NCBI GenBank assembly: GCA_000708835.1 | Contig: DF237499.1 | Span: forward strand, 1-58,702 | DNA: 58,702 nt | Origin: Klebsormidium nitens | Lineage: Eukaryota > Plantae > Klebsormidiophyceae | Direction of reading: 5' to 3' | Shown here: positions 22,321 through 33,305 of the stretch, one piece after another | How positions within the stretch are numbered: the stretch's first letter is position 1 | Layout: each line of letters opens with the position of its first letter | Position numbers and translations under genes: made by a program | Notes under the pieces: model-generated | The model's database searches: none | Told to the model about the DNA's origin: nothing | The model's input: only the letters and a program-made list of their open reading frames with translations

Positions 22321-23241
22321 TAACTTATTAGTTGTATACTGAGACGGTGTTTGAAGAACTTTAGTAAGGAGCATCAGCATTCAGGCTCGCTACCAAAAGC
22401 TACGTTGCGCCCTTTGATTAAATGCAATGATTTGACGCGTTTGCATTGCAGTAAAACGCAGAACATTCTAGTGCATGTCAAACTCGCCGCCAGTCCGTTC
22501 ATTACAGGTGTCCCAGTCATGCAGACTTACATGTGGTCCGTTCAGGCGTCGGCTCTCTGAATTCACAGGGGTATCCTAACGGACACGCCCGAAGACAAGA
22601 CAGAATTCTGCCACATGCGTGCTAGCTGTGCGAATGCAGGGCAACTCGAGCAAATTTACCTAACCGCATATAGGCTGGCCTGACTTATTCGCGCCGGCCA
22701 GGCACGTTCCGAACTTCGATTTGAAGCTCGGTACAGGGATACACCTAAAGAACATGATATGGCAGGGCGCGTCACGCGGCACTGAGCTTGGCAACTGGAA
22801 GCTGGCCCGCTGGCAAGCCTGCCAGCTCAAACTAGATGTATAAGTATGGAGCTAATTCTACTCAACGGAGGGCCGCCCGGTGTTCACATGATCGGGCCAT
22901 GCGCCGAGGCATTGACATACACACGCGGAAGGCTGCACATATGTGCAATCAGCCAGACGACAGTCGAATCAATCAGCATGTGCCACATGCACATATAGGT
23001 GCGATGCCTTTTGCAGTGTCAAGATTTGTCAATGTCTTGGCCGTCCGGGCGATATCATGTCATGTTAGTGGGTTGTGACATCCGAGACGTGGCTGTCACT
23101 AGCACTCCTATCGACTTGCACGTTGGCCTGCCAACGCTTGTTGTTTCCAAAAGCATTCCTTATTGTTGATGTTATTGTTGAAACGGAACTTCAAGAAAAG
23201 AACGACAATGGTTAATTCAAGCCTCCTTGCACGCTTACACT

Positions 23242-25249
23242 CTACTCCGGCCGTCTCTTGATCAAAATAGAGCCGCATGTTAAGCCGCCGTCAGCTTTAT
23301 GAGCCTCCGACATGTCTATCGGGTATACCGGAACAGACAGACCTTCATATGGATTGTGGGACGTCCGAAAATAGGCACGGGGGTAGAGAAGAGACCCGTT
23401 CACGAGCAAGGCATTCGCAGCTCCTGTCTCACGTATTCGAAGGGCGTGAAGTTCGGGTTGGCCCAGGAGCTTTTTGATCCTCTTGAAGATATCGAGTACT
23501 TCTGGGGAGTCCTCGACGGCCAGAGTGTTGGGCCCCACCCACGAAAGGCCTGCAATGTCAAGTGGGGGTTTATGGGCTTTTAGTACCGCCGAAGAAGACC
23601 CCTGTTATAATCAAAATTATAAGAGGTTTGCGGGACATGACTTGAACGGCAGGAGGCAAGGGAAAACGAAAAGGTTCACACTAAGGAAGAAACGTATGAA
23701 TGCTGATCAAGACTTTCGGGGCGTTGAGGACGAGCAAGGCGACGTTGGAAACATGAGCGAAGCGCAGCAAATTGTCTTAAAGGCAAAGAATTTCAGGAGG
23801 TCCACGAACCTGATTTCAGATGCAGACCAGAGGGCACAGGCAGTAGCACAACAGGGGTGTCAGGGAAAGCCTTGCGCAGAGCGTCGACTCCTGCCTCGTT
23901 CGTGCGACTGCGCAAGTGAGCTAGAAGAATCAGTTTTAGCCGAAACACGGTTCAATTCTTCGCTCGAAGAGCATGCTTTGCTGTAGCCAACCTTCAGCAT
24001 ACTGTTTCAGGCGGCTCCGCTCAGATTTGGCTAGAAATGACGAACAGAAACGAAGAGATAGCAGACGTATTTACCAAGACAACATTGCAGTGCGACAGGA
24101 GTGGAGGTTTGTCAAATCACTTTCAAAGACTTTGAGCAAGCTTGATGCAGTGTTCATGTCGAAGGCAGATCGAAGATACATGCTATCGGACGTCAGACCA
24201 ATCCTACAGACAGCAGTAAGCCACTCGCCTGCTGAGTCCGACAAAGATGTGGGTACGCGTTTGCAGCACGTCCCCGCCATCGATAGTCGCATCGGGTTCA
24301 GTGTCAGTGGTCTGGACCCCCAGCTCCTGGAGCTTCTCCCTGACTGCGGTCACCTCGCCCTGGCGGGCGATGTTTCCCTGGCGAGTAAAAGATAGGTGGT
24401 CTCTCAAGGAAACCACTTACAGCTGCACGGCATGTCAACCTCAAGGTACATTGATGAAAAGCTGACTATCGTCCAGTGGAGACGCTTGCTGCGGCTTCAT
24501 AACGAGTGGAGTTAACCTGCTTAGACAGAGTTCTCAGGGGGGCTTTGCTGGCTTTTCGCTTTGATTCCGCCCAAACATTTCGTCCCAGACTTTTGTCCTA
24601 CTTATTGGGCTTGGTGTTTGAAGGTGAACCTGCAGCAAGAACCTTCTGTGCCACAATAAGACTGCGAGTCCTTGAAGAAGAGAGCATATCTCAACTAGTC
24701 TTGCTTGAAAACTGATTGGTGAATCCGGTTCAAACGCAGGAAAGCTGGGTCCCGCCTACATGGCGTTTTTTAGCAGTACCCCTCACCGGTCTTGTGATCA
24801 GGGCGCTATTACCCCGAACCACGGCAGTGTCTTCAATGAAACAGCAATCTGGGTATCGGTTGTCTGGGGCTATCTCAACAACTCGAGGAACAAGTCCTGC
24901 CAAGGAAGACGGACTTTTTTTCTTTTTTCACATGTCAGCGGGGAGCACAGGGAGATGCAAGAAGGGAATTGTGGTGGAAATGAGAGGACAATTGCAGCTT
25001 TTTGAGGCCAAGGAATGCCCTGATGTGGGGCGCATCTCTTATTTCATAAGAATGTTCTGCTATTGCAATTGTTAAGATTATCACAAGAAGGGGGAAAGAG
25101 ATCTCACTCTTAAGCTGCTCAACATATGCGGCATGTTGCTGTTTGGCCTTTGCAACATCGATCGCCTCTGGCTTTTCATGGAGCGTCAGCGCCTCTGAAA
25201 AGGAGTCGGGAACCCCTCTAACTAGAGCGATTGCATCAGGGACATCCAT
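23242..25249 (-). CDS. DDAH: N(G),N(G)-dimethylarginine dimethylaminohydrolase (amidinotransferase superfamily), about 268 aa
   Basis: Exons 25249-25108, 24896-24787, 24377-24229, 23907-23810 and 23549-23242 sum to 807 nt in frame; intron 3 has a GC donor. Motifs: ALVRGVPDSF, QQHAAYVEQL, YPDCCFIEDTAVV, ALITRPG, RQGEV, ATIDGGDVL, FVGLSSRTN, LHLKS (catalytic His) and ADGGLTCGSIL (catalytic Cys). Confidence 0.9.
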
Positions 25250-25789
25250 TTGAGAATGTGTTGAGAACGTTCTCCTTGTCTGGTCACTTGCGTCCCACAA
25301 AGTGAGGGAGAGTAGCGAGCTGTGGTAGCTAGCTTGAGTATGCCCCTTGCGTAGACCGCACCTTGTTTGCACAACATTGCGCAGGCCCAGGAGGGCCCAG
25401 CGATTAAGGGGTGACATCAGTCAAGCAGTTTCTACCATCACCTCACCATGTTTCGCCTGCCGTGCTGAGAAGCAGGTTTCTCATTGCAAAGAACAGGTTC
25501 AGCAATTGAACGAGCTTGGCTTAAACCTCTCGCTGAGCTGCCTTCTCCTCACGCTCTGCACAGACGGGTCCCTTATGTATACCCACATTCTCCCCCTCCC
25601 CAAATGCTCCCTTTCCCCCTTGTCCAGAGCGCCTGGAAAGCTGATATGAGCGACTGTAAAACCCTAATCGGTAAAACCCAATCTGCACAGTATGCCTCAA
25701 CGTGCAAACTGAGCTTCTCAACTTTGAAACCAGATGATGGAGCTGGCGCGCTTCACTTCAATCAAAGACACTACTTAATAGTATTGGTG
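25250..25789. promoter_or_regulatory. Putative bidirectional promoter between DDAH and the NCBP3-like gene
   Basis: The divergent ATGs are 540 bp apart. This is inferred from the gene arrangement only. Confidence 0.5.
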
Positions 25790-29946: not shown

Positions 29947-32900
29947 CTAAGTTTTGCTCAGGACATTTAGATCGTTGTAGTTTGGCATCTCATCTTCACT
30001 CGTGCTTTTTCTCGAAGCGGGCGACGCTTCACCCCTTCGAATGATGAAGATACCGATATCGTCGCTCCGCCACTGCAGAAGAGAAAAAGTATGTCACGCT
30101 TTCGGTTGCCTATACATAGGGAAACGTTCTCTCATACATACCTGATCCCATGACGAGGGGCCCGATGGCCAGAAGCGGAGCCCGGGACCATGCTCGAGCG
30201 CAACTTGGGCCTACGAGATTACACGTCGACCGACAACTCGAGAGCTCACCTGCGGTGGTCGGAAGCAACGCAAACGATTCATTTGTCGACGCGGGTAGGA
30301 AACACAGAACTTGTAGGCCTTCTCGCAGGAACCAGAGAGTACCCAGGCAGTAATCTGAACCGGTGATTGTTAGAACGCCAACCCTACCATAACAGCACGT
30401 ATTCCTGATCTGCCTCAATATCCTCAGCACATGACAGTGGCTCAACACAGCCAACTAGCATGAGGCGGCCAGGAAACCCACCTCTGGATGCAGCTTGTCG
30501 TAGTCTACCTTGACGGACACGAGCCCGTGCTCCCGCATAATTTGGAAGGCCTCCGTGGTGCCGAACCTCAGCTCATAACCGATGATGATCTGCATAAGCA
30601 GAAGGCGTGTTACCAGCCCCGATGCGGCTGTTGCATCCGGCAGGTTTTGCGCTTCATTGGGACGCACGGCATAACCAGCGGCGAAGCAGGCCGCGTACGA
30701 ACGGAAGGCACTTGCAAACCGGACGTGCTGTTGAAAGAAGGTGATAAGCAGGCAAGTGCTTTGGACGTAGGAGGAAAGAACGTTGCTTGCCTGGGTGTTT
30801 GGGCCACTTAGGTCCAGCAAGGTTTTACAGAGGGCAGGGACGAGGGACCTGCGGGCTACAGACACACTAAAACTCAGAAGAGATCTCAGGGTTCCTTTCC
30901 TCCTCCCATCGTGATTGTGATGAAGCGGATGCACGAGCGAAGTTTTGCGTGTACGCTCGACAAGTGACGCACTCCAAAATGGAACCTCATGAAGTTGCTA
31001 CCAACTTCTGGCCCTTGCTTTCTCACCACCCGTCCTACATCGACGACCAAGGCAAGACGCAGCATTCCGCCCGGAAGTCAAGCGAACGGCTAGCGGGTTG
31101 ACAGGGCGAAAACTTTGCAATTTAGGGCGGAACATATTGGATGCACTTACATGTCATACAGGATGTCCGACCCCACCACGTAGTCGACCGGCGGAAACAG
31201 GTGGCTCGCATCGGACCCCCACTCGAGCACGTCGGCTCGACACCGCTCCTCCAGCTGGTTGGCCTGCAAGAGAAAGTAGCGTTCTAGAAGCCCATCAAGC
31301 GGCCATGTCAACGTTGCAGATTACCTGCCCAGAACGTTCAGCGAGAAGGACATTTGCGATCCTGAGTCGTTTCAAATCCAGCAGCCTCATATAGTTGCAC
31401 CCGTATTGCAGGGGAAGTCACGGAATGGCTGTTCGACTTCATGCAACTTTGAGAGACAAAGACGCAATGAACCTTTAATCGGACCCCCTCTCGAGAACGA
31501 AGTCCAGTAAGAGCTGTGCCTCATTTTGAGCAGCTGCGCCCCCAACAAGATTCTCAAGGGGTCCAAGTTGGCTGGTCGTCGGGTCACCTGTATGTTGGTC
31601 CGCAGGCCTGGCATAAGTGCCTCGCGATCGGTGAGGACCACGTCGGCACCTAAGGAGGCCAGAGCCAGACCCACCTGCAGGAAAAGCACCGGGCTGCGAT
31701 CGGACTCCAAACAAAGCCAACTTTGTTGAAGAGTGAATAACCTTGGGCGCAATCGACTCACCAGACAGGACTGGCGGCACTTGTCGAAAGATAGTGGGCT
31801 AGCAACTATGAATAAAAGTATGCTGTCCAAACGCTCTGCACGACCAGGAAATCGGAGCGTTCTGAACCCTTAGTATCTACTTTGTAGATCGAACTAAAGG
31901 ACAAGCGGGGAACCGGGGGGCTTCGGGGCAATCCTTTTGAAGTCGTGTTATATATCAGCGGTCAGGGTGTTGTACAGAACGAACGTTTATAGAAACTCCG
32001 GTGGTCAAATCGGGCACGCTGTTGTCAATTCTGAAAACGCTAAAGGTCGAAGCAAATCCAATATCTATAACGTCAAGCGGAAATCCTGCTATCAGCCAAT
32101 GAGTACACTAGTTTCGAAGGCTTCAAGAATTTGCATCTTGTCAACCCACTGCGGAACGGAAAAGTGTCCACTCTTTCGCACTGCTGGCGCTACGCTGATG
32201 ACAATCTTACCAGGCCAGTACCCGCGCCTGCACAGAGAAGGAGCAAGGTGTCACCTGATTTATAACAGTATTTACAGCTTTGCAAAACATTTGTTGCCTG
32301 TACAAGGCTGGGAAACTCATGTATGAGCAAGATTAAGAGACTATCAAAGCAACGACCCGCCAGGAAACCTGCATTTGAGTTCCACTTCTCTATCCAGCGG
32401 AGGACAGCGCGTTGGGTCAGCACCAATATGCACCTCAAGAAACGTATACATGCGATTGGGCGAACCTAACGCCCTTTTGCCTTGTCAGTATTCTCACCAA
32501 CTTCGATCACCCGCTTGCCCTTGAAAGAACCTGCAAAAAACAGGAGGTCCACACATGTGAGTATTCAGCCAGTGCCTCTGCTGACAGATCATTCATTGCT
32601 AAAGACACCAGAACTTTTTGCATCTTCGCCCTCAAAGGTACTCATCAATTCTTACGATCCTCTTGGGATCATTCACGGAAAGCAGGAAGGGTGGTGCGGA
32701 TGGAGACTAAGCAAGTTCAAAGAGACTGAAATCAGCTGATATCTGGAGGGAACAGAATCAACAATTGTAGTGGCCGCACTCACCAGGGGGCCATGACTGG
32801 GTTTCAAACCACTTTGCGACAGCGATAGCCTGCATGGGACATTAGGAAGCGGGAGGCCTGTAAGCAGGAGAACATACGCCAGACCGGCGCTGCAAACAAG

Positions 32901-33305
32901 GCCTGTATCAATCATGCATTCAAAATCCCACACCGCATTGCTTGTCTCCATTTCGCTCTAAAGTTGGCTTGCCCATTCATTAGATTTTTAGGATTGATGG
33001 GCGCAGCCTCACGGCATTGCGCTGATTCCTGTCGCCCTGCTCTCCGACGTCCCTTTACAGCATTCTATGCAGAACAGTGCTGGAAGAACAGGAGTGCTCA
33101 CACAGTCCCACACCCAGGCCCCTGTCAGCGCCCGCCCTGTCTGCGGGTCCATCAAGGAGCTGTGCTCATAGATACGAAGCTCCCGCCCCCGGACGCTGAT
33201 ATCCCTAAACCGGCGTGCCGTATCAGGTGGCTCTGAAGTGGTGGTGCCGCCAGCTGAATCGATGGCAGGTTGCTTTACGGAGTCATCTGCTTCCGGGGAG
33301 GCCAT
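29947..33305 (-). CDS. Family-16 (METTL21-like) SAM-dependent protein lysine methyltransferase, about 263 aa, 9 exons
   Basis: Exons 33305-33102, 32829-32784, 32530-32498, 32227-32211, 31674-31588, 31263-31151, 30848-30791, 30589-30482 and 30072-29947 sum to 792 nt in frame. Motifs: TGAWVWDCA, motif I GKRVIEVGAGTGLVG, post-I VVLTD, LEWG, the family-16 signature VVGSDILYD, and IIIGYELR. Confidence 0.9.

Follow-up and report, generated by a model that had tools for sequence, protein, structure and literature searches.

The closest described relatives of the gene analyzed here are the dimethylarginine dimethylaminohydrolases (DDAHs) of animals and bacteria, represented by human and bovine DDAH-1 (PDB 2JAI, 3I2E, 6SZQ and 2C6Z) and by the Pseudomonas aeruginosa enzyme (PaDDAH; PDB 1H70 and 3BPB) together with the Streptomyces-type family model NF045660. 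More remote are cyanobacterial ArgZ and AgrE (PDB 6JUY and 6LRF), which share the pentein fold and the attack of a cysteine nucleophile on a guanidino group, but act on unmethylated arginine, release two ammonia and are fused to further domains. Among streptophytes, orthologues have so far been named by machine, including those of Marchantia polymorpha (“dimethylargininase”, BBN14875.1), Riccia sorocarpa and Selaginella moellendorffii (“DDAH 1 isoform X1”). We found no experimental study of these proteins in the literature, and searches on DDAH and dimethylargininase in plants and algae returned no paper that deals with such an enzyme from either group. Here, we describe a DDAH gene of the alga Klebsormidium nitens, located on the minus strand at positions 23242–25249 of contig DF237499.1 (assembly GCA_000708835.1), the whole of which, 58,702 nucleotides (nt) long, was analyzed and is called the window throughout. 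Its product is the public 268-residue “hypothetical protein KFL_005500040” (P0001).

Our overall reading, which we consider probable, is that this is an expressed, resident streptophyte DDAH that has been kept for the disposal or salvage of methylarginines, any effect on nitric oxide synthase (NOS) being at most an added one. Within this reading, it is the substrate, the role in salvage and the location in an organelle that we infer.

The KFL_005500040 enzyme

The KFL_005500040 product is, as judged from its sequence and modeled fold, a genuine DDAH-family enzyme (EC 3.5.3.18), predicted to be a pentein-fold hydrolase with a Cys258–His163–Asp117 triad. In a PDB sequence search, P0001 matched human DDAH1 at E = 4e-46 (161 bits, residues 8–266 against 17–283), with about 38–40% identity over the full length and a similar mature-domain size, and PaDDAH at E = 1e-26 (28–29% identity); no family other than DDAH appeared at E ≤ 0.01. 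With exon 3 alone or exon 5 alone, the PDB search returns solely DDAH chains. An AlphaFold model, based on an alignment of 84 homologues, reached a pLDDT of 95.1 and a pTM of 0.92. The top 23 matches to this model in Foldseek are all DDAH, and 20 of them are human or bovine DDAH-1 chains with template modeling (TM) scores of 0.88–0.93, root-mean-square deviations of 1.7–2.1 Å (about 1.9 Å at a TM of 0.93) and 36–39% identity; PaDDAH follows at a TM of 0.80–0.83. RESC5, ArgZ/AgrE, amidinotransferases and arginine deiminase rank lower, at 13–21% identity (18–21% for ArgZ/AgrE, at a TM of about 0.8).

The predicted catalytic center retains every key residue of human DDAH1, and the same catalytic residues are found in bacterial DDAH. 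The nucleophile Cys258 (23277–23275, motif DGGLTC) aligns with Cys274 of the human enzyme, His163 (23822–23820, motif LHLKS) with His173, and the triad acid Asp117 (24281–24279) with Asp127. Around them, the substrate clamp is composed of Asp64 (24849–24847; human Asp73), Phe67 (Phe76), Glu69 (24834–24832; Glu78), Asp70 (24831–24829; Asp79), Arg89 (Arg98), Arg135 of the RTN motif (Arg145) and Asp253 (Asp269). Asp117 and Asp253 are at least 90% conserved among the 84 homologues; the other eight residues are invariant, as are Gly118, Gly119 and Asp120 of the GGD motif. The roles of the human residues in holding the substrate backbone and guanidino group are those that we take from DDAH-1 structures. 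An earlier sequence-only reading of this locus had listed the DDAH motifs, namely the ED acid pair (Glu69–Asp70), GGD (Gly118–Gly119–Asp120), the histidine of LHLKS (His163) and the cysteine of LTC (Cys258). All of them are in place, and with the full triad and substrate-binding residues its call of a catalytically complete enzyme holds up as a prediction. Compared with the vertebrate enzymes, K. nitens DDAH is without the insertions of 4–6 residues in their C-terminal half and has DGGLTC where they have DGLLTC.

Exons 1–4 are clearly under purifying selection. Across 162 codons compared with a related species (L002, a Logan contig with 76–86% DNA identity), differences fall 10/7/45 by codon position, and 39 codon changes are synonymous against 14 that are non-synonymous.

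Gene structure, transcripts and a possible presequence

Contigs from four public runs, each from a different study, were aligned to positions 23100–25500 of the window. Spliced contigs carried all four predicted joints in 4/4 runs. For this minus-strand gene, the contigs skip 211 nt at 24895/25107 (intron 1), 409 nt at 24376/24786 (intron 2), 321 nt at 23907/24229 (intron 3, depth 99–161) and 260 nt at 23548/23809 (intron 4). Spliced contigs have depths of about 50–180, compared with about 2–30 for intron-holding ones. The runs bear no RNA label on record; their contigs are nonetheless RNA-derived, because spliced forms dominate unspliced ones, which is possible from transcripts alone. The DDAH gene is expressed and spliced as annotated.

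The gene model, read from the sequence and its in-frame translations, comprises five exons and four introns, and the stop codon TAG (23244–23242) and annotated ATG (25249–25247) form the exact ends of the 23242–25249 interval. The exons sum to 804 nt, or 268 codons, and their translations equal P0001 residue for residue; this entry was retrieved by a word search with the exon-1 residues of a mechanically called open reading frame and then checked against the exon translations. No other K. nitens protein occurs among the best 120 matches of the word search. Exon 1 (25108–25249) holds 47 codons plus 1 nt, corresponding to P0001 residues 1–47, and codes for the first β-strand and the lid region. 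It is followed by intron 1 (24897–25107; 211 nt, GT–AG, phase 1, within codon 48) and by exon 2 (24787–24896; 110 nt), which carries Asp64, Phe67, Glu69 and Asp70, the residues expected to contact the α-amino and guanidino groups of the substrate. Intron 2 (24378–24786; 409 nt, GT–AG, phase 0) lies after codon 84 and precedes exon 3 (24229–24377; 149 nt), the source of Arg89, Asp117 and the GGD motif. Intron 3 (23908–24228; 321 nt, phase 2) interrupts codon 134. Exon 4 (23810–23907; 98 nt) supplies Arg135 and His163, and intron 4 (23550–23809; 260 nt, GT–AG, phase 1) falls within codon 167. Exon 5, with its stop codon, spans 23242–23549 (coding part 23549–23245) and contains Asp253 and Cys258. 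Contigs with the exon 5 joint reach 23100 and continue past it, giving a 3′ untranslated region of at least 23100–23241. A Pfam scan of the five exons taken singly gave no match, the pieces being too short.

The four spliceosomal introns proposed by the sequence-only reading were thus all found as joints; the detail that it missed is that intron 3 is a genuine GC–AG intron. Its plus-strand ends CT..GC correspond to GC..AG on the gene strand, and its donor is AG/GCGAGT. In-frame splicing of intron 3 requires this GC donor and restores the DDAH motif GLS-S-RTN, and the serine created across the joint is also present in P0001. Intron 3 is efficiently spliced in all four runs. Its GC donor is kept as AG/GCAAGT in L002, and the Physcomitrium and Selaginella counterparts of intron 3 use GT as donor. 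Separately, one contig of depth 2, from run X1 only, skips 235 nt inside intron 3 (23915–24151), and the skipped piece is bounded by GT..AG in the plus-strand sense. Either a rare antisense transcript that is spliced or a quirk of assembly may account for it.

The reading frame extends beyond the annotated start. From the annotated methionine, it stays open over 56 more codons in the upstream direction, back to an in-frame ATG at 25417–25415, and the resulting possible N-terminal extension (25250–25417, minus strand) lies outside the public annotation. Spliced mRNA contigs cross this region and reach at least 25500. Should transcription begin upstream of 25417, the annotated ATG would come third among the AUGs, after an out-of-frame one at 25377. 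The extension resembles a transit peptide in being basic and rich in Ser, Thr and Leu, with 7 Arg/Lys against 2 Asp/Glu and 25% Ser/Thr. The related species L002 (L002:342–506) has GCA at the annotated start and no other in-frame Met before residue 246. It keeps the upstream ATG and the first seven codons (with two synonymous changes) in an open frame, in which the sole indel is 6 nt long and in frame. Basic, hydroxylated N-terminal extensions of 30–95 residues occur in most streptophyte orthologues, among them those of Chlorokybus, Mesostigma, Mesotaenium and Selaginella; the Marchantia extension has 60 residues, 11 of them basic and 1 acidic. Animal and bacterial DDAHs have no such extension, so that animal DDAH1 differs in this respect from many streptophyte orthologues, possibly including that of K. 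nitens, which carry a presequence.

Other observations speak against a presequence in K. nitens. Relative to L002, substitutions in the extension follow a nearly neutral pattern (7 synonymous, 19 non-synonymous; 10/12/16 by codon position), short upstream open reading frames lie further 5′ of the ATG at 25417, and the contigs cannot mark the transcription start, the long ones running into the divergent neighboring gene. On balance, we lean slightly towards the hypothesis that K. nitens DDAH is made as a longer, organelle-targeted precursor of 324 residues from the upstream ATG. The annotated start codon of the K. nitens entry deserves re-examination. The entry is still called a “hypothetical protein”, a name that it can lose, and its orthologues are already machine-named dimethylargininase.

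The divergent neighbor is an NCBP3-like gene on the plus strand, with a coding sequence from about 25790, about 540 bp from the DDAH gene. Spliced DDAH contigs from three runs extend 0.9–1.1 kb beyond 25500 into this neighbor. The two transcripts probably overlap at their 5′ ends, or else the genes have a bidirectional promoter in common. Scaffold neighbors are ordinary eukaryotic genes, encoding TAF2, a Methyltransf_16 protein, the NCBP3-like protein, a domain-less 232-residue protein and RPB1, and no sign of a functional cluster was seen among them. The Methyltransf_16 gene, two genes from DDAH at about 29947–33305 of the window, belongs to a Pfam family of lysine rather than arginine methyltransferases and has no evident link to arginine methylation.

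Descent of the streptophyte DDAH lineage

Word searches were run with the K. nitens protein and with its Physcomitrium orthologue, the best 120 matches being taken from each, and were complemented by a cluster look-up. Orthologues among the matches listed have 42–54% identity to the K. nitens protein, and with the moss query identities among mosses are as high as 80%. They come from the early-branching streptophyte algae Mesostigma viride and Chlorokybus atmophyticus; from the Zygnematophyceae Mesotaenium endlicherianum and Spirogloea muscicola; from the liverworts Marchantia polymorpha, M. paleacea, Riccia fluitans, R. sorocarpa and Calypogeia fissa; from the mosses Physcomitrium patens and Ceratodon purpureus; and from the lycophytes Selaginella moellendorffii and Diphasiastrum complanatum. 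The machine-named proteins of M. polymorpha, R. sorocarpa and S. moellendorffii have the same active-site residues as K. nitens DDAH at 44–50% identity; unlike them, the K. nitens protein in its annotated form has no N-terminal extension.

No fern, gymnosperm or angiosperm DDAH occurred among the best 120 matches of either word search. With the moss query, the two lycophytes stand at ranks 13 and 15, and the collection holds named proteins from hundreds of angiosperm proteomes; because of this, the apparent absence of DDAH from angiosperms is well supported. Its apparent absence from ferns and hornworts is weakly supported. The fern and seed-plant absence rests on the best 120 matches of two word searches rather than on an exhaustive named survey, and this counts against our reading of the distribution. 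The sequence-only reading knew of no characterized angiosperm DDAH, which fits the lack of a seed-plant homologue among these matches.

Phylogenetic analysis (IQ-TREE, 59 rows, LG+C20), with which a quick tree of 89 rows agrees, places all streptophyte DDAH sequences, K. nitens included, in one clade with 100/100 support. Within this clade, land plants group with 98/88 support, mosses, liverworts and lycophytes each form one group, and K. nitens lies in a basal algal polytomy. The backbone connecting streptophytes, animals and bacteria is weak, with support of 75–94. A tree against animal and bacterial DDAH had been proposed as a check for horizontal origin: a recent one is ruled out, and at this backbone support the streptophyte DDAH may, at its deepest level, descend either vertically or from an ancient transfer.

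Introns were mapped on the public genomic loci of Physcomitrium, Selaginella, Marchantia polymorpha and amphioxus. All four K. nitens introns (4/4) occupy the same alignment columns, in the same phases, in Physcomitrium and Selaginella. Since both the introns and the clade are common to them, the DDAH gene was already a resident nuclear gene before the split between Klebsormidiophyceae and land plants, in keeping with the long-resident nuclear gene of the sequence-only reading. In amphioxus, by contrast, none of the four intron positions coincides with those of K. nitens, an observation without bearing either way on common eukaryotic descent. Clade and introns together indicate one vertically inherited streptophyte lineage, which spans the earliest-branching algae of this group, the bryophytes and the lycophytes.

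Several further observations concern the homologues themselves. The Marchantia polymorpha orthologue (L004:1501–2451, KZ772728.1) is intronless, unlike the K. nitens gene; this state reflects either the loss of all its introns or replacement of the parent gene by a retrocopy. DDAH-like proteins of chlorophytes (Chromochloris, P0055; Chlorella sp. A99, P0169; Micractinium, P0199) fall outside the streptophyte clade, in a cluster with 100/99 support that also holds bacterial sequences, Bdellovibrio-like ones among them, a placement suggestive of a separate origin. The public gene models of Ceratodon (P0017), Chlorokybus (P0130), Spirogloea (P0024) and Riccia fluitans (P0009) look faulty: sequence is inserted or replaced precisely where the conserved introns lie, following LHLKS and following GLS, and the R. 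fluitans model is fused at its N-terminus to a phosphatase fragment (PF00149).

Methylarginine disposal and nitric oxide synthase

By homology to the animal and bacterial enzymes, a chemical course can be proposed for K. nitens DDAH. The arginine backbone would be clamped by Asp64, Arg89 and Arg135, and the guanidino group would be bound by the Glu69–Asp70 pair with Asp253. Cys258 would attack the guanidino carbon of a free N-omega-methylated L-arginine, either asymmetric dimethylarginine (ADMA) or monomethylarginine. Dimethylamine or methylamine would depart, and hydrolysis of the thiouronium intermediate would yield L-citrulline. The lineage has persisted in NOS-less plants over hundreds of millions of years, and the conserved job of the enzyme is therefore most likely to dispose of, and salvage, the methylarginines released by turnover of proteins methylated by protein arginine methyltransferases (PRMTs), with citrulline re-entering arginine synthesis. 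In K. nitens, clearing of NOS inhibitors may be an added effect but is not the reason for the gene's retention.

An alternative is that DDAH serves as the regulatory arm of an animal-like PRMT–ADMA–DDAH–NOS axis, tuning nitric oxide (NO) output, and that it was lost together with NOS. K. nitens has two NOS genes, KnNOS1 (KFL_000760350) and KnNOS2 (KFL_006460015), both on scaffolds other than that of DDAH, as the sequence-only reading had anticipated for Klebsormidium, and Mesostigma and Chlorokybus also have NOS (PMC8728061). A DDAH orthologue is present in all three algae, and in K. nitens the gene is expressed and its predicted active site is complete, all of which would suit such an axis. 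These three are also the only lineages in which NOS and DDAH co-occur, taking DDAH from the word searches and NOS from the published survey, in which no land-plant genome has a NOS homologue (PMC8728061). The loss of NOS and the loss of DDAH would therefore lie far apart in time, and the published study of KnNOS partner proteins makes no mention of DDAH or ADMA (PMC8728061). The two genes were not kept and lost together: vertically inherited DDAH orthologues persist in liverworts, mosses, lycophytes and Zygnematophyceae. If DDAH is organelle-targeted, it would in addition be apart from a cytosolic NOS. Many DDAH-bearing bacteria, like bryophytes and lycophytes, have no known link to NOS, in keeping with a role in catabolism or salvage. 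We regard the axis as unlikely.

Of the two possibilities raised by the sequence-only reading, co-occurrence with NOS is seen in Klebsormidium, Mesostigma and Chlorokybus, whereas loss together with NOS is contradicted by the orthologues that persist in land plants without NOS. The distribution of DDAH is largely unrelated to that of NOS, the outcome that the earlier reading had itself named as refuting the link. Because DDAH was kept, conserved in sequence and structure, in bryophytes and lycophytes long after NOS was gone, the function selected there cannot depend on NOS. Nitrogen or arginine salvage, the second possibility, fits this distribution better, since the lineage persisted in plants without NOS. 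Control of the algal NOS by DDAH may be a side effect in K. nitens.

A different substrate is a less likely explanation still, and one that we would give little weight. The DDAH fold might here serve an arginine dihydrolase- or deiminase-like enzyme, a citrulline-degrading one, or another guanidino amino acid hydrolase of plant nitrogen metabolism. Several chemistries occur on the one superfamily fold, as the lower-ranking matches of the fold search (ArgZ/AgrE, arginine deiminase and amidinotransferases) illustrate. The points that weigh against our own assignment belong here as well. The substrate is assigned by homology to human DDAH1, at a level of identity of about 38–40%, and no plant or algal member has been assayed. 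The one difference from human DDAH1 that stands out in the alignment is in the lid, where Leu30 of the human enzyme corresponds to Thr22, with Leu21 and Leu23 on either side. The end-to-end match to the dimethylargininase model NF045660 (positions 2–249 of 249) scores 146.6 bits, below the curated equivalog cut-off of 340, and the protein scores 20.1 bits against Pfam PF19420, for which the cut-off is 23, and likewise 20.1 bits, just under the cut-off, against PF02274. Calibration puts these scores in perspective. With PF19420, true animal DDAH1 reaches just 36–38 bits, and the model misses the orthologues of mosses, liverworts and lycophytes altogether. After this calibration, hidden Markov model cut-offs were dropped as an uninformative criterion of membership, and the sub-threshold scores are treated as a weakness of the models, the NCBIfam cut-offs delimiting narrow bacterial equivalogs. 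Against another substrate stand the identity to assayed animal DDAH1, compared with about 13–21% to ArgZ, AgrE, arginine deiminase and amidinotransferases; the top three NCBIfam matches, all of which are dimethylargininase models; and the retention of all residues that hold the backbone and guanidino group in DDAH.

A bacterial contaminant or recent horizontal transfer, for which one could cite the bacterial proteins P0019 and P0125 from metagenome-assembled genomes at 45–49% identity, a Streptomyces-type model as the best NCBIfam match and a tree backbone compatible with an ancient bacterial origin of the streptophyte lineage, has a negligible chance of being correct and is refuted by the four introns spliced in RNA-derived contigs, the ordinary eukaryotic genes on either side (TAF2, NCBP3-like and RPB1), a streptophyte clade that mirrors the species tree and the intron positions common to moss and lycophyte.

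Methylarginine disposal or salvage by a resident DDAH is therefore the reading that we carry forward. A more far-reaching version of it, which we consider doubtful, is that streptophytes had an organelle-targeted DDAH from their algal ancestor, that it was kept through the lycophytes and was lost in euphyllophytes or seed plants, and that in NOS-bearing algae it also closes an animal-like loop between methylarginines and NOS. If true, this loop would be the first outside animals, and the comparison of Klebsormidium with NOS-less Marchantia would provide a genetic handle for plant NO research.

Plant NO biology has seen a long dispute over arginine-dependent NO synthesis and over the meaning of “NOS inhibitor” effects. 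For this field, the analysis sets right the tempting view that DDAH disappeared along with NOS. An intact, selected and expressed predicted DDAH is retained by streptophyte algae, bryophytes and lycophytes, and apparently not by seed plants. Two questions are thereby split: how plants dispose of methylarginines, which are released by every PRMT-containing cell, and whether the NOS of algae is controlled by them. The single-copy genes of Klebsormidium, Physcomitrium and Marchantia offer simple genetic systems.

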